A DNA stretch of 64,000 nucleotides from sequence record OM456492.1; one strand, 5' to 3'. Positions 56,130 through 61,567 of this stretch are shown here, in pieces (position 1 is the stretch's first letter; every line of letters starts with the position of its first letter). The translations under genes were made by a program, and so were the position numbers. Below the pieces are notes generated by a model. It did no database searches. It saw only the letters and a list, made by a program, of their open reading frames with translations, and had not been told where the DNA came from.

Positions 56130-56135
56130 AAAGCA

Positions 56136-56161
56136 CTACCCTCTCCCGAAGGAGAGGGTAG
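56136..56161. terminator. Bidirectional terminator
   Basis: CTACCCTCTCC-CGAA-GGAGAGGGTAG between convergent genes, with A-rich and T-rich flanks. Confidence 0.9.
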
Positions 56162-56170
56162 CCTTTTATT

Positions 56171-57904
56171 TTATTCGCCGTCAAGCATATTTTTGCGATT
56201 ATTGCCTTTCACCAACGGGTTACGTTTGGCCAGGTTCAGTATCGTCTGCAGTGTAGCGGCAGCACCGCAACAACGACGCACCAAAGACAGGTTACGTCGC
56301 AAGCCGACGAAGAGGTCTTCGTCACCGTCTGGGGAGAATAACACCATCGAGAGTTCGCGACCGTCGGTGCGCAGACCAGAAGGTTGATTAAGCTCGTTCA
56401 TGATGACTTCGCTAATCAGGTTAACGTATTCAACGTTATCCTTGGTTGCTTTCTGGAACTGCTCCAACACCTTAATCGTGTTATTAACCGCCTTATCCAG
56501 CGCACTGTAGCGGTTCAGGTTAGTCGCAGCGGTGTCGTTGGTAAAGCCTTGTTTACCTAACGTTACCACTACAGCCAGCAGCTCACGTTCGTCACCAACC
56601 GATAACGTGCCCGCTTGGCGCATTTGCTCTAAGCACTCGCGTCCCAAGAACGCAGATGCTTGTGCATTAACCAAGACTTTACCAGGCACGAAATCCACAC
56701 CATCATCATGACCCACTAAACCACGAACTTTGTTTTCTGGAATAACGACCAAAGGTGCAGTAGCGTATTCGAATCCTTTGCGGGAAACGTCGCTGATGAT
56801 GAAGTTCATCGTGGTGTTCAGCTGCGCTAACGCCTGACCGAAAATAAGCGCGGTATCATGTGCTGCTTTGTTAACCTGCTTACCATTGTGCGTGGTGGTT
56901 GAACCTTGCTGATTCTTAAAACCTTCGGCAACACTTGGGTCAATCATCGCTTTAAAGGCACTCTGGAGCGAGCCAAAGTAACCGATAAGTTCACTGGCAA
57001 CATTCGACATCTGATGGAAGTTCAACAGGTTCGGGATACGTACACCGGCTTCGCGAGCAGACTTCGGTAACGCCTGCCAGGCTTTCTTACCCACTTCAAT
57101 CGGGTAGATACCGTACGTCACGTTGTGTTGTAACAGGGTGTCTAACAGATCGTGAATAACCTGCTGGCTTGACTGACGTTTCTTAGTGTAGCCTTTGAAC
57201 AACTCAGTGAACGGCGAACGACCCAGCGCGCTGCTCAAGTCGTTCAGATACTCTTCCGCGTTCATGTTCGTAAACACTTCGTCGGCCATCGCGATAGCCA
57301 AGTTCAGGTTTTCCAGGTCACGACCTTTCAGACCCTTAGAGGCTTCGATGTATGCATCTTTCACTGCGCTGATTTTCAGCTGACCGATGATGGTATTTTC
57401 GGTCTGGGAGAAACTCTCTGCTTTTTCGCCGACTTTCTCAGCGTAACCTTCGCCGTCGAATTCGCCATTACCAGCAAACCCGTTACCGTTGCTGATAATC
57501 CAACCGATGATTTTGATAATCGCGGTCATGATCAGCACAACCAATCCCACTTTACCTGCATTTGCCCAGGATTCGAGCGCAACAATAGTCTCTTTCTGGT
57601 GCGTGCGGGTATAGTTCGAAGTCAGGATTTTGCGAACGGCTTCGGGAATTGTACCTGGGCGAGAAGATTCAACAGCGACAGCGACATCTTTCGACAGACC
57701 TGCGCGACGCACTTCGTCAAGAATCGCGTCAATTTGCAGAATCAGTCGAGAGCCGTAGATTAAGTCAGCTTCGTTGCGTTGCATGTACAGATTGAGCTGG
57801 TTGACAGAATCAATACGCTCGGCCATACGTGAACGCAGGACTTCACCGATCTCCCCCAAACGCCATTTGGGGTGGGTGGCGTTACCTGTCATTTCCATGC
57901 TCAT
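56171..57904 (-). CDS. Head/ejection protein (SPN3US gp47-type) with a hydrophobic helix
   Basis: VAVES and VALES sites followed by VGLVVLIMTAIIKIIGWII. Confidence 0.75.
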   Translation of the reverse strand: MSMEMTGNATHPKWRLGEIGEVLRSRMAERIDSVNQLNLYMQRNEADLIYGSRLILQIDAILDEVRRAGLSKDVAVAVESSRPGTIPEAVRKILTSNYTRTHQKETIVALESWANAGKVGLVVLIMTAIIKIIGWIISNGNGFAGNGEFDGEGYAEKVGEKAESFSQTENTIIGQLKISAVKDAYIEASKGLKGRDLENLNLAIAMADEVFTNMNAEEYLNDLSSALGRSPFTELFKGYTKKRQSSQQVIHDLLDTLLQHNVTYGIYPIEVGKKAWQALPKSAREAGVRIPNLLNFHQMSNVASELIGYFGSLQSAFKAMIDPSVAEGFKNQQGSTTTHNGKQVNKAAHDTALIFGQALAQLNTTMNFIISDVSRKGFEYATAPLVVIPENKVRGLVGHDDGVDFVPGKVLVNAQASAFLGRECLEQMRQAGTLSVGDERELLAVVVTLGKQGFTNDTAATNLNRYSALDKAVNNTIKVLEQFQKATKDNVEYVNLISEVIMNELNQPSGLRTDGRELSMVLFSPDGDEDLFVGLRRNLSLVRRCCGAAATLQTILNLAKRNPLVKGNNRKNMLDGE

Positions 57905-58344
57905 GAAATTTGCCCTTTCAGTTCTGCCATGTAGAAACCAACCACCTCCATAAAGCGGCTAATCCACAGACCGACGGTTTCCCAGATATCTTCCCCGAGT
58001 GCCTGGTTGAAAATCTCACGAACTGAGAAACTTTCCAGAGCTTTAGCGCCGCCATACACGTTGCAGTAACGATTGCAGTACAGACCCACGGTCATGTCCT
58101 CAATCACGCCTAAATCAACACAGTACAGCTCGTTAACGTCAGAGACGATATTACGCATTACCGGACGTAAAAACGTCCCAGCGGCCTCTGCAGCGCCATA
58201 TTGGCCATTGTCAGCCAATACCGCGTTATACGCCAGTGAGAAAGCAACCAGGCCGGTCAAAGCACGCTGGGCGTGTACACCTTTCCCTTCGTTGGTACGT
58301 TTGAAATCCAGTACCAGGTTATTTAAAGAAACTTTATGCGTCAT
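57901..58344 (-). CDS. Probable head protein
   Basis: 147 aa, ATGA-coupled in the head operon. Confidence 0.7.
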   Translation of the reverse strand: MTHKVSLNNLVLDFKRTNEGKGVHAQRALTGLVAFSLAYNAVLADNGQYGAAEAAGTFLRPVMRNIVSDVNELYCVDLGVIEDMTVGLYCNRYCNVYGGAKALESFSVREIFNQALGEDIWETVGLWISRFMEVVGFYMAELKGQIS

Positions 58345-58359
58345 GTTAAGTACCCTTAC

Positions 58360-59712
58360 TTAGGAAGAAGTCGCCTGACTAAGCTTCGCAGAAGCCACAC
58401 GCAGGTCATTAGAAAGATAGCGCTCCATCGTACGCTGATAATCCACCCCAGCACGCTCACGGCGACCGCCTGGGGTCAGCGTTTTCATGATGAAGCTAAA
58501 GACGTTATCTTTGTCTTTCACGGTTTTCAGCAATTCGTCGATAGACGCAATGCCCTGCAGGATACGTTTACGGTGCTCATTCGCTTCTTTCGTGGTGCTG
58601 CCTTTTAAGGTGTTCAGCTCCTCCACTAAGTTACGACGCATCGTCTCAAAACGTTCCTGTGGCGGATCGTAGATAGTGTTGCGTGGATCGTTCACAATCA
58701 GGCCGAACGCCACGGAGATAGCCGTGAAGAACAGACCAACTGGATTAGTCGAAGCCACAATCAGCAGCGAAACGTTAAGCATCTCCAGCATCAGATGCAC
58801 ACCGTAGTTCATGTACGACGTGTTCCGGCAGAGATAGAATTGGGACGTTTCGATTTTGTACAAGGCTGACGCCAGGTACGGGGCTGCACCAAAGCGAGCT
58901 GCGAAGTCATCTGCAGCACGTTCCCAGGTACGGTTAGCGAACCCTTCCGAACCGGTAACAAACGGACGCTCAAGCAGAATGTCTGTCACCAGATGCATGT
59001 AGATGTTCTCTTTAGACATCTCTTTGCAGATAGTTTCCGGCTGATTCACTTTGGTGTTCAGCATACGTTCAACGTCTTTTACGACTTTTAAACGCACTGT
59101 CGGGTCTTCTGTTTGCATCATGCGGTTCGCTGCAGCATCCGCAATCAGGTTCGTTACCACCGTACGCATCAAGGTACGGAAGTAGTAGTAGACGTGGCCG
59201 ACCTCATGTAGAATAATCGCCGCGACTTCTAAATCCGTTAACTCGATACCTGTCAGTAGTTTCGGGGTCAGCCAAAGTGGGGACGGCACCTTGCTGAGTT
59301 CGCCTGAAAGCTTCGCATTTTTATCGTCGAACTCGCCGTTCAGCTCGTTCTCTTTTAAGAACTTACTGTAGACATCCAGGTCGGTGTTACCCTGCACCAT
59401 CTTGCGTTGCAGGTCGGCGATGATTGGGTTGTTCGCGTCGAGCTTCGGTGGCTCCACACCCGCAAACACAACGTCCGCCACACCTAAGTCGGACCCGTTA
59501 CGAGGCAGGACTGTAATACCGTTGTTGTCAAAGACCCAGGCAGCAATACCAGAACTCTGATAACCCGCTGGCGAGAAGTCGCCCGCATCACGGAACTTAC
59601 GTACCACTTCCGCCAAAGAGGCGAGTTTCTTTTTATCTTGGAATCCGATGGACTCCGAGGCCACGGCTTTCGCGTCGGCCAACGAGGTTATGTGCTTTTG
59701 CCAGTGTCCCAT
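58360..59712 (-). CDS. Virion HEXXH zinc metalloprotease-like protein (M48-type)
   Basis: IILHEVGHVY, downstream WERAADDFAARFG (ExxAD), hydrophobic hairpin VSLLIVASTNPVGLFFTAISVAFGLIV, VASES propeptide site. Confidence 0.7.
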   Translation of the reverse strand: MGHWQKHITSLADAKAVASESIGFQDKKKLASLAEVVRKFRDAGDFSPAGYQSSGIAAWVFDNNGITVLPRNGSDLGVADVVFAGVEPPKLDANNPIIADLQRKMVQGNTDLDVYSKFLKENELNGEFDDKNAKLSGELSKVPSPLWLTPKLLTGIELTDLEVAAIILHEVGHVYYYFRTLMRTVVTNLIADAAANRMMQTEDPTVRLKVVKDVERMLNTKVNQPETICKEMSKENIYMHLVTDILLERPFVTGSEGFANRTWERAADDFAARFGAAPYLASALYKIETSQFYLCRNTSYMNYGVHLMLEMLNVSLLIVASTNPVGLFFTAISVAFGLIVNDPRNTIYDPPQERFETMRRNLVEELNTLKGSTTKEANEHRKRILQGIASIDELLKTVKDKDNVFSFIMKTLTPGGRRERAGVDYQRTMERYLSNDLRVASAKLSQATSS

Positions 59713-59782
59713 TTAGACGTTCCTTTTAGAAAATACGTTACCCACAAATCAGTATAGCAGACACCATATTTGAGAGTAGACC

Positions 59783-61567
59783 ATGGAAATCAATACCTAT
59801 TACGCACCCGAGGATGTCATCGCTAAAGAGTGCAAGCACGTCGCTTATGCGACGGACGAAGAAAAAGAAAATGACTTTGTCCTCATCAAAGAGGTCATCC
59901 ATACTAAGGATGGCAGGCTTATCCCGCGCTTGGTAATGCGTGAGAATTTAAAGCGTCCGGTGTACGTTACCCGTGAAGAATATCGTAACCACCAGGAGAA
60001 AAAAGAGTTCGAAGAAAAAGGAAAATGTCAAGAACTCTGGACTACTGATGCGCAGATGGCGAAGACGTTGCAGATGGGTTTAGGTGCACGTTTCCCTGAC
60101 CCGAAAAAGAACCTGCGACGTGTTTGTACTAGCCCGTACGTTTATTGGGCTGACTTACCGATTACCAGCTGGATTAAACAGAAATACTTAAAGCGTTGGC
60201 CAAACAACATCAGTCCTAACCGTCTTTGCGTATACGACGTGGAGACCAACGAAATGGACGGCACGAAGGAACCGTGGATCGTGTCATTTATCTTAGACGA
60301 CGAAATCCATTTCTTTGGTGCTAAGAACTACATGGACCGCATCGGTAAAAACGCGGAAGAAGTCATTCTCAAAAAAGCGCAGGAACTCTTAAGCAAAATC
60401 GAATTCGATGAGAAAGACAAAAAGACTGGCGAAAAGGTGACAAAGACCAAAGACATTATCAGTGGTTATAAAATCTTCACCTATACCTGCGCTACGGCAG
60501 GGCAGTGCATCGTCAGGATGTTCGAAGAAATTCATCCGCGTCTTCCTGATTTGCTGGTCGCATGGAACCACCAGTTCGATATTTCACGCATGTTAGAAAC
60601 CTTGCAGAAAGAAGGCATCGATCCACTGGGCGTCTTTAACCATCCGGATGTGCCGGAGAAATACCGTCGTCTGTGGTTTAAAGAAGACCAGGCGAACAAA
60701 AAGACAGAATCCAAGTCACTCACCAAAGCACCGTCACAACAGTGGCACGTACTCTACTGTACTGCGTCTTTCTACTGTGTGGATGCCATGGTGTTATTCC
60801 GTTCGTTGCGTGTCCACGAAGGCCAACGTCCTTCGTACAAGTTATCTGCCATACTGTACACCGAACTCGGTTTACACAAACTCGACATTCCTGGCCTGCC
60901 GTATGAAGATAACCTGCAATGGCACATAAAAGCACAACGGGACTACCCTGCCGAATACGCCGTATACAACATGATGGATAACTTGTTAATCGTGTTGTTG
61001 GATAAGAAGACAAACGACTTGTCTTCGGCAATATCCATTCTGGCAGGTTTCTCGATGTACGATATCTTCCCGTCGCTACCAAAACGTATCTGCGTGGCTT
61101 TTACCTATTATCTGTATGACAAAGGATACGTCATCGGTTCCGTAGGGTCTGCAATGCGTAACGATTACGATGAAGAGGTTATCGGTACAGACGGTTGGAT
61201 TGTTACCCTGACAGCATGTATGAATGCTGAGAACGGTCTGAATAACATTCTGGAGGAGATTGACGAATATTACTCTGCGTTCCGTGGTCAAACTGCGGAT
61301 GCGGACTTAACCCAGGCCTACCCTTCGGCCACAAACATGATGAACCAGTCTCGTGAGACCACACTCATTGAACTGCTGTCCATCAATGGGGTTAGTGAAG
61401 AGATTCGACGTCGCACGGGCGTCAACTTAACTGCTGGGCGAGTTAATGCCATGGAAATAGCGACAGACTTCTTCTGCTTACCGGACAAAGACACTGTCCT
61501 GTCTACGTTCTTACGTAAGCAAGGGGAAGTAGTGACAGAGCCTATGGAGTACATCTGCGGGTTCTAA
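59783..61567 (+). CDS. Family-B DNA polymerase, exonuclease + motif A subunit (split polymerase)
   Basis: ExoI VYDVETNE, ExoII AWNHQFDI, ExoIII YNMMD, motif A DADLTQAYPS; no motif B or C. Confidence 0.88.
   Translation: MEINTYYAPEDVIAKECKHVAYATDEEKENDFVLIKEVIHTKDGRLIPRLVMRENLKRPVYVTREEYRNHQEKKEFEEKGKCQELWTTDAQMAKTLQMGLGARFPDPKKNLRRVCTSPYVYWADLPITSWIKQKYLKRWPNNISPNRLCVYDVETNEMDGTKEPWIVSFILDDEIHFFGAKNYMDRIGKNAEEVILKKAQELLSKIEFDEKDKKTGEKVTKTKDIISGYKIFTYTCATAGQCIVRMFEEIHPRLPDLLVAWNHQFDISRMLETLQKEGIDPLGVFNHPDVPEKYRRLWFKEDQANKKTESKSLTKAPSQQWHVLYCTASFYCVDAMVLFRSLRVHEGQRPSYKLSAILYTELGLHKLDIPGLPYEDNLQWHIKAQRDYPAEYAVYNMMDNLLIVLLDKKTNDLSSAISILAGFSMYDIFPSLPKRICVAFTYYLYDKGYVIGSVGSAMRNDYDEEVIGTDGWIVTLTACMNAENGLNNILEEIDEYYSAFRGQTADADLTQAYPSATNMMNQSRETTLIELLSINGVSEEIRRRTGVNLTAGRVNAMEIATDFFCLPDKDTVLSTFLRKQGEVVTEPMEYICGF

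Follow-up and report, generated by a model that had tools for sequence, protein, structure and literature searches.

Peptidases of the M48 family generally operate at membranes. Ste24 is a barrel of seven transmembrane (TM) helices with its zinc-site motifs at the ends of TM6 and TM7, and in HtpX a hydrophobic hairpin sits between HEXXH and the Glu ligand. HtpX and BepA/YcaL/LoiP (M48B/M48C) are envelope or membrane quality-control proteases. In phage T4, the internal proteins IPI-III and Alt carry a capsid-targeting sequence, a short N-terminal peptide that is removed after Glu by the prohead protease. Propeptides of this kind mark injected internal proteins, and none of these T4 proteins is, to our knowledge, a metallopeptidase. 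Here we describe a head-gene operon, gp45-gp46-gp47, in a 64,000-nucleotide (nt) stretch of sequence record OM456492.1 (the window), the first gene of which encodes a predicted M48-type zinc metallopeptidase that is packaged in the head of a jumbo phage.

The closest described counterparts of these genes are in phage phiKZ, where gp84 (413 amino acids, aa), gp85 (149 aa) and gp86 (422 aa) have the same layout, are followed by the convergent gp87, and are annotated as head proteins. Cryo-electron microscopy (cryo-EM) places phiKZ gp85 and gp86 in a vertex-binding complex that sits against the inner capsid surface at the corners, and the modelled gp86 chain begins near its cleavage site (PMC11297242). 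By the same method, Goslar gp66 and gp65 were likewise found in a vertex-binding complex, gp65 being much longer than gp86. In the opening minutes of an infection, the DNA of chimalliviruses is sheltered in a membrane vesicle, for which no membrane-acting phage factor is known as yet.

The window is from Salmonella phage SaP7: over the 3.9 kb around gp45-gp46-gp47, identity is 100% with SaP7 and ~98% with SPN3US. The latter, of the genus Seoulvirus, is a jumbo phage of 240 kb that has been studied in depth. The gp45 protein is likewise 100% identical to that of SaP7 and ~98% identical to SPN3US "virion structural protein 1". Asesino, a close relative of SPN3US with a gp45 homologue that is 76% identical, is a nucleus-forming chimallivirus. 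The window is that of an SPN3US-type nucleus-forming jumbo phage, and the stretch considered here is a head-gene operon. The coordinates given for the gp45 and gp47 open reading frames (ORFs), both on the minus strand, in a preliminary description made from the letters of the window were exact (Table 1). Because gp45 and gp46 are separated by only 15 nt, the gp47 start overlaps the gp46 stop by 4 nt and a terminator precedes gp48, the three genes form a single transcription unit.

Two motifs in gp45, HEVGH (residues 169-173) and ERAAD (residues 264-268), sit within FANRTWERAADDFAARFG. The M48 signature of HEXXH (two His ligands and the catalytic Glu) is present as HEVGH, and the third-ligand Glu, placed 60-90 residues downstream in M48 enzymes, is represented by E264 in NRTWERAADDFA, 91 residues past H173. 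The NRTWERAADDFA region aligns with SRRFEFQADAFA of ZMPSTE24. From the composition of gp45 itself, 0.007 HExxH motifs would be expected by chance. H169, E170, H173, E264 and D268 are invariant in 39 of 39 homologues (~20% identity) and in 147 of 147 (~25% identity); the complete invariant set in the larger alignment is G137, H169, E170, G172, H173, E264, D268, R354 and E430. Since the catalytic residues are conserved so strictly, we infer that gp45 is a working peptidase and not a relic. An exhaustive profile search with the gp45 family retrieved 4,484 clusters at 50% identity (E <=0.001), 1,848 of which have E <=1e-30; almost all members are 410-450 aa long and nearly all are full-length proteins. 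Two residues outside the zinc site, R354 and E430, are also invariant, and the family retains a YDxPxxR motif.

Pfam family PF01435 matches gp45 alone with 17.8 bits (E 0.003; curated cut-off 20.3). Of the 39 homologues, 19 match this family with E values of at most 0.1 (the best being 2.2e-7), with no rival family recurring. When a profile of the 147 homologues was searched against 177,635 PDB sequences, ZMPSTE24 was the top match (E 5e-5, with both motifs aligned), and Ste24p was found at E 0.008. The AlphaFold model of gp45 (pLDDT 82, pTM 0.83) has three short strands followed by a long active-site helix. The best Foldseek matches to this model are ZMPSTE24 chains at E 0.07-0.2, with none below 0.001; the comparison with M48 folds that the preliminary description had suggested thus ranks ZMPSTE24 first, at weak agreement. 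The exhaustive aligner VIA superimposed 188 aa of the model on ZMPSTE24 (4aw6; Z 7.5, 17% identity) and also matched Ste24p (Z 6.9), BepA (Z 5.9-6.2) and the M48 peptidase 3c37 (Z 6.1), every value being below 8, a range common among helical proteins by chance. These structural scores are individually modest, yet all of them appear to indicate one family, M48. We consider it very likely that gp45 has the M48 fold with an intact zinc site.

gp45, gp46 and gp47, each searched as a single sequence, had no useful match among PDB sequences, and NCBIfam has no family for the gp45 group. In the literature outside subscription papers, we found neither a metalloprotease reading of SPN3US gp45 nor a function for phiKZ gp84. 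Automatic names in GenBank include "beta-barrel assembly-enhancing protease" (Proteus phage 7) and "peptidase" (Erwinia phage AH06) for gp45 relatives. As predicted from sequence, gp45 would be a solid and little-noticed enzyme assignment, namely an M48-fold peptidase with its own architecture in jumbo-phage heads.

This architecture differs from those of the characterized families. ZMPSTE24 and Ste24p (MEROPS M48A; 4aw6, 6bh8, 5syt, 4il3) have HEXXH and the downstream ExxAD in common with gp45 and are its best profile, Foldseek and VIA match over the catalytic core. Unlike Ste24, gp45 is a virion protein whose single hairpin comes after the third ligand; it also has an N-terminal domain of its own and, at the C terminus, a helical bundle. 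HtpX and BepA/YcaL/LoiP have the same zinc-site signature as gp45; BepA (6sar/6ait) and 3c37 align with it over ~145 residues (Z ~6). The hairpin of HtpX precedes the Glu ligand, whereas that of gp45 follows it, and BepA has tetratricopeptide repeats, which gp45 lacks. The gp45 hairpin consists of two hydrophobic helices (residues 303-320 and 324-340 in the model, pLDDT ~87) with an STNPVG turn between them, and reaches a Kyte-Doolittle (KD) hydropathy of 2.31 over 15 residues. By hydropathy and in the model, this is the only hydrophobic stretch and lies C-terminal to E264, and no TM segments were identified N-terminal to HEXXH. In 36 of 39 homologues the region is an uncharged stretch of 43-96 residues with a Pro/Gly turn, the sequence of which drifts freely. 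Such a pattern, in which character is kept and sequence is not, suggests a lipid-facing segment. Following the hairpin, Y348, D349, R354 and E430 are conserved in the C-terminal region, and VIA matches to the C-terminal bundle were generic helical bundles only.

The preliminary description had recognized in this ORF an HEXXH, a downstream ExxAD third-ligand motif and a hydrophobic hairpin, all of which are present, and had compared them with the HtpX/Ste24 membrane proteases. The M48-type assignment is upheld by motif and family profile, with weaker agreement from the fold searches. The membrane topology of HtpX/Ste24 is not, as the hairpin lies C-terminal to the third zinc ligand and N-terminal TM segments are missing; on topology, a grouping of gp45 with HtpX or Ste24 is not warranted.

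In SPN3US virions, gp45, gp46 and gp47 were identified as head proteins by mass spectrometry, with SC/M values of 2.99, 1.05 and 2.17, respectively (PMC5694885 for gp45 and gp47). On this scale the tail sheath (~264 copies) has a value of 8.84 and the portal (12 copies) one of 1.29. The abundance of gp45 in the mature virion is similar to that of gp47, and the earlier claim that the protease is packaged is borne out by its detection in the head of this near-identical phage. Both gp45 and gp47 are substrates of the SPN3US prohead protease gp245, and mass spectrometry showed that gp45 is cleaved at ASE-20 with the loss of 20 residues (PMC5694885, PMC10052503). E20 is conserved in at least 90% of the 147 homologues. 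SPN3US gp47 is cleaved at AVE-79, and ALE-111 is where its maturation cleavage is expected (PMC5694885, PMC10052503). Every cleavage seen in SPN3US heads fits the prohead protease motif (PMC10052503). The length of the gp45 propeptide matches that of the T4 capsid-targeting sequence, as the authors noted (PMC5694885). In losing a short N-terminal peptide after Glu to the prohead protease, gp45 resembles T4 IPI-III and Alt; ejection has been demonstrated for the T4 internal proteins, whereas that of gp45 is a proposal.

The neighbourhood of gp45 links it to the phiKZ head proteins. gp45 and phiKZ gp84 are clear orthologues (BLASTP 2e-21, both phrog_2767); gp84 is likewise a head protein encoded upstream of gp85 and gp86, and is 37 residues shorter on the N-terminal side. 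Among 59 viral-contig loci with a gp45 relative, a gp85-like and a gp86-like gene both lie directly downstream in 30, and one of the two does so in 14. Pairwise sequence comparison detected no similarity between gp46 and gp85 or between gp47 and gp86, and no phiKZ homologue of gp47 was reported by the SPN3US authors (PMC10052503). An initial hhalign link between gp47 and gp86 (85.8%) was discarded as inflated, a Ralstonia-phage clade being in both groups. The profile-profile tests of record (hhalign) used groups without a shared clade, together with reversed controls. In these, the gp46 family matched the gp85 family with 93.6% (E 2e-7; reversed control P 0.07). The two proteins are of similar length (147 and 149 aa) and are both encoded between the M48-like gene and the gp86-like gene. 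By these profiles, gp46 is a remote homologue of phiKZ gp85.

For gp47, the N-terminal module of SPN3US-like sequences only matched that of the phiKZ-like sequences with 93.5% (E 2e-7, residues 53-141 versus 23-112), with P 0.29 for the reversed control and P 0.55 for an unrelated family. The shared module extends from the final part of the propeptide across the x-E cleavage site to the first mature helix and has a K-x-x-x-W pattern in common, and the gp47 propeptide carries a G-[LIV]-S-R-D...ES..PG.IP...T.N.S motif common to the gp86 family. The best match of the gp47 model, ranking first of 48,161 chains with the exhaustive aligner (Z 7.7), is chain 8y6v_G, which is phiKZ gp86. In this match 239 of 297 residues are aligned (model 105-575 versus chain 120-418), beginning at the cleavage site. 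It emerged solely with the exhaustive aligner, Foldseek returning only noise with the gp47 model. With a profile that includes intermediate sequences, the top two PDB matches are 11fg, "PVC Protein gp65" (E 5.5e-5), and gp86 (E 0.0016). The "PVC Protein gp65" of 11fg and 11mk is a 934-aa chain, matched over residues 71-224; by its name alone, we take 11fg to be Goslar gp65. Because full-length comparison of strict groups was not significant and a profile of SPN3US-like sequences only matched nothing in the PDB, the case for homology of gp47 and gp86 depends on three things: the N-terminal module, the match in fold and the order of the genes. On these grounds gp47 probably corresponds to phiKZ gp86. 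Gene order, head location and the aligned x-E propeptide cut are features that gp46 and gp47 have in common with phiKZ gp85/gp86 and Goslar gp66/gp65 (PDB 8Y6V); gp47 differs from gp86 in being 155 residues longer and in its strongly hydrophobic first mature helix.

Two long metagenomic ORFs touch on the same proteins. The first, in an ENA metagenome contig (L064:2846-6466), is a continuous ORF of 1,206 aa that begins with an unknown 375-aa N-terminus, continues with a gp86-type N-terminal module (residues 376-499) with its own VVALE/A site (slash at the cut), and ends in an M48-like module (HEIGH at 929, EMAAD at 1024). Downstream of this ORF, gp85-like and gp86-like genes are present as separate genes. 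The second (L065:3753-6272) is weak, at 15.6 bits. A simple gp86-M48 fusion was rejected as the explanation of these ORFs, given the separate genes that follow in the first and the weakness of the second.

The assignment of gp47 bears on its published role. Its VALES sequence (residues 108-112) is followed by GKVGLVVLIMTAIIKIIGWII, which exceeds every other 19-residue window of the protein in hydropathy (KD 2.58), so the TM-like helix that the preliminary description had placed just after this site is present; it was published in 2017. In that study, gp47 was an essential head protein, 47(am1) particles looked intact and were non-infectious, TMHMM predicted a TM helix at the start of mature gp47, and contact with the host membrane was proposed (Ali et al., 2017; PMC5694885). 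Ejection of gp47 was inferred from the mutant phenotype only, and a propeptide fragment of the protein remains in the head (Ali et al., 2017; PMC5694885). The gp47 half of the earlier finding is already in the literature.

In our model of gp47 (pLDDT 85), the TM-like helix is part of a long helix (residues 103-138) that comes after the propeptide helices. The first mature helix is strongly hydrophobic only in the SPN3US-like and Ralstonia RSL2-like clades. It aligns with the first helix of mature gp86, which is amphipathic in the phiKZ-like phages and belongs to a capsid-bound protein. As the propeptide fragment stays in the head, it may keep covering the gp47 helix. The description of gp47 as a TM-bearing ejection protein holds for the TM-like helix itself and is weakened by the alignment of this helix with that of capsid-bound gp86. 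Given its correspondence to gp86, gp47 should no longer be presumed to be a free transmembrane ejection protein, although it may still be ejected. One component of the phiKZ vertex complex, gp184, was modelled in its capsid-bound state and has also been validated by western blot as injected (PMC11297242 for the capsid part). As gp184 is both a component of the vertex complex and injected, capsid binding is compatible with ejection.

Genetic data from phiKZ bear on the importance of these genes. In the transposon sequencing (TnSeq) tables, orf84-orf87 (L062:3964-9902) have zero insertions after selection, and orf84 alone (1,242 bp) has 0 compared to one per 42 bp genome-wide. This suggests that the protease gene orf84 matters, with polar effects possible. 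Deletions in phiKZ orf85-86 have been obtained with Cas13a, and the TnSeq authors suspect polar effects. gp47 is essential in SPN3US, whereas phiKZ tolerates the deletions in orf85-86. Because its phiKZ orthologue tolerated no transposon insertion, gp45 is probably essential.

Overall, the evidence leans towards an explanation in which gp45 is a head-packaged M48-type peptidase, gp46 and gp47 are counterparts of the phiKZ vertex-complex subunits gp85 and gp86, and gp45 may act at a membrane after ejection. The prohead protease cuts gp45 after E20, and the protein stays in the mature head, probably as internal cargo, a location favoured because its propeptide is short, of the targeting type and conserved at E20, and because the symmetric capsid maps showed neither phiKZ gp84 nor its Goslar counterpart (PMC11297242 for phiKZ). 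Docking of gp45 on a lipid bilayer through the hydrophobic hairpin is suggested because the hairpin is conserved in character and not in sequence. Once ejected, gp45 would act at the host inner membrane or at the early infection vesicle; since the capsid holds no membrane and M48 peptidases generally operate at one, a post-ejection membrane would be its most likely site of action. Taken alone, this last step is a tentative proposal that may well prove wrong. Several observations weigh against the explanation as a whole: gp45 lies under the PF01435 cut-off and phiKZ gp84 alone has no Pfam match, the structural Z values of gp45 are as low as stated above, the full-length hhalign comparison of gp47 and gp86 with strict groups gave only 1.5-21%, and the profile of gp47 from SPN3US-like sequences only matched nothing in the PDB. 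Moreover, the gp45 hairpin could equally be a buried protein-protein interface inside the head, and the conserved placing of its gene beside those of capsid-bound proteins is as compatible with work in the head as with ejection.

The main rival places the action of gp45 in the prohead at the time of assembly, a reading that we regard as rather unlikely. The peptidase may carry out a second step of trimming, in which the long propeptides and the core fragments freed by the prohead protease are cut down for exit, or may be an enzyme docked by the vertex-binding complex in the prohead or head, with the hairpin as a protein contact. The gp45 gene keeps a conserved order with the genes for the vertex-binding complex, the abundance of gp45 is similar to that of gp47 (SC/M 2.99 versus 2.17), propeptides of 111-254 residues need clearing from the head, and unassigned helical density adjoins gp65 in Goslar, all of which fit this alternative. 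Also in its favour, only 20 of 63 semi-tryptic peptides from phiKZ virions fit the prohead protease motif, and in the natural fusion in L064 a gp86-type N-terminal module, rather than the short peptide, precedes the M48 module. However, gp84 and its Goslar counterpart are missing from the capsid maps, a 40-residue uncharged hairpin with free sequence drift is more typical of contact with lipid than with protein, and the cleavage sites published for SPN3US heads include no non-canonical ones (PMC10052503). The joint module that the preliminary description had envisaged, in which gp45 and gp47 both leave the head, insert into the inner membrane of the host or the early vesicle and cooperate there, the protease processing co-ejected proteins or destroying membrane sensors of the host, is in our view unlikely. 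It would account for two co-transcribed head proteins that both bear hydrophobic helices and retain their gene order, and for 47(am1) virions that look intact and are non-infectious. Chimalliviruses do inject many head proteins and wrap early DNA in a lipid vesicle, the vertex-binding complex component gp184 is injected, and the L064 ORF joins a gp86-type N-terminal module to an M48 module. On the other hand, we found no injection data in the literature for gp45/gp84 or gp47/gp86, and the gp47 helix, hydrophobic in some clades only, aligns with an amphipathic helix of a capsid-bound protein. In addition, phiKZ orf85-86 can be deleted and orf84 is without insertions, so the partners are not equally needed, and the cleavages in SPN3US heads all fit the prohead protease motif.

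Assembly of chimallivirus capsids is reported to take place at the inner membrane, and the gp45 hairpin and gp47 helix could tether the assembling procapsid there, the peptidase fold being secondary. Both hydrophobic segments are conserved, and both proteins, as prohead protease substrates, enter the prohead early. We consider such a tether quite improbable, as it has no need of invariant catalytic residues, both hydrophobic segments persist in the mature detached head, and phiKZ-type gp86 is without the hydrophobic helix. That gp45 is a catalytically dead structural head protein keeping an M48-like fold would agree with the sub-threshold sequence scores of gp45 and gp84 against Pfam. Pseudoenzymes usually lose the very residues in question, whereas H169, E170, H173, E264 and D268 are invariant in 147 sequences of ~25% identity in which most other positions vary, and this possibility is the most improbable considered here. 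The membrane action proposed for gp45 after ejection could also be extended well beyond SaP7, a speculation that we think unlikely to hold in full: with gp45/gp84 as founding member, there would be a family of M48 metalloproteases, delivered by the virion and spread across jumbo phages, which would exit with the DNA, anchor in the host inner membrane by the hairpin and cut membrane proteins, aiding pinch-off of the early vesicle or disabling membrane-bound defence sensors. In SPN3US-type phages, the gp47 helix, released from the vertices, would be the partner.

With its intact protease site and lipid-like hairpin, gp45 is a concrete candidate for a membrane-acting factor of the chimalliviruses, and is genetically testable via the SPN3US amber-mutant system. 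If gp45 works inside the head instead, a giant capsid would prove to hold a second maturation protease, for which there is likewise no published report. Newly added here is the correspondence of gp46 and gp47 to the vertex-binding complex of phiKZ and Goslar, which shifts the reading of the published "ejection protein" label of gp47 and gives a structural frame for the non-infectious 47(am1) particles.

Table 1. Features of the gp45-gp46-gp47 operon and flanking genes (positions in the window)
Feature	Position	Strand	Description
gp48 ORF, 986 aa	53169..56129	+	virion protein, counterpart of phiKZ gp87
Bidirectional intrinsic terminator	56135..56162	both	between convergent gp47 and gp48; operon end
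gp47 ORF, 577 aa	56171..57904	-	essential head protein, probable counterpart of phiKZ gp86 and Goslar gp65
Hydrophobic "TM-like" helix, gp47 residues 114-137	57494..57565	-	start of mature protein; KD 2.58
Propeptide, gp47 residues 1-111	57572..57904	-	cleavage sites AVE-79 and ALE-111
gp46 ORF, 147 aa	57901..58344	-	head protein, remote phiKZ gp85 homologue (vertex-binding complex dimer)
gp45 ORF, 450 aa	58360..59712	-	head-packaged M48-fold zinc metallopeptidase (predicted), phiKZ gp84 orthologue, phrog_2767
gp45 residues 345-450	58363..58680	-	conserved YDPPxER motif, then C-terminal helical bundle (model)
Hydrophobic helix-turn-helix hairpin, gp45 residues 303-340	58693..58806	-	hydropathy and model
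ERAAD, gp45 residues 264-268	58909..58923	-	third zinc ligand Glu in M48 ExxAD; aligns with ZMPSTE24 E415-x-x-A-D
HEVGH, gp45 residues 169-173	59194..59208	-	two zinc ligands and catalytic Glu; aligns with ZMPSTE24 HELGH 335-339
N-terminal propeptide, gp45 residues 1-20	59653..59712	-	removed after E20 (VASE/S) by prohead protease
Leader, 70 bp	59713..59782	-	separates divergent gp44 (DNA polymerase) and gp45
gp44 ORF	59783..61567	+	DNA polymerase part

The terminator that ends the operon is strong, with a perfect 12-bp stem that includes 7 GC pairs and T-runs on either strand. In the leader, an AAGGA ribosome-binding site lies 8 nt ahead of the gp45 ATG; no sigma-70-like promoter was identified there by a scan that excludes phage late promoters. 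phiKZ gp87, to which gp48 corresponds, is a putative baseplate wedge protein according to the phiKZ TnSeq paper. The head operon is flanked by a tail gene and a replication gene, and the same is the case in phiKZ. In several records of Salmonella phages SPFM1-SPFM20, the gp45 and gp47 genes are fragmented or have shifted ORFs, so that proteins of 275-445 aa cover 4-11% of the query, or the match is split into 3-6 pieces. Such fragments look like assembly frameshift errors rather than biology.

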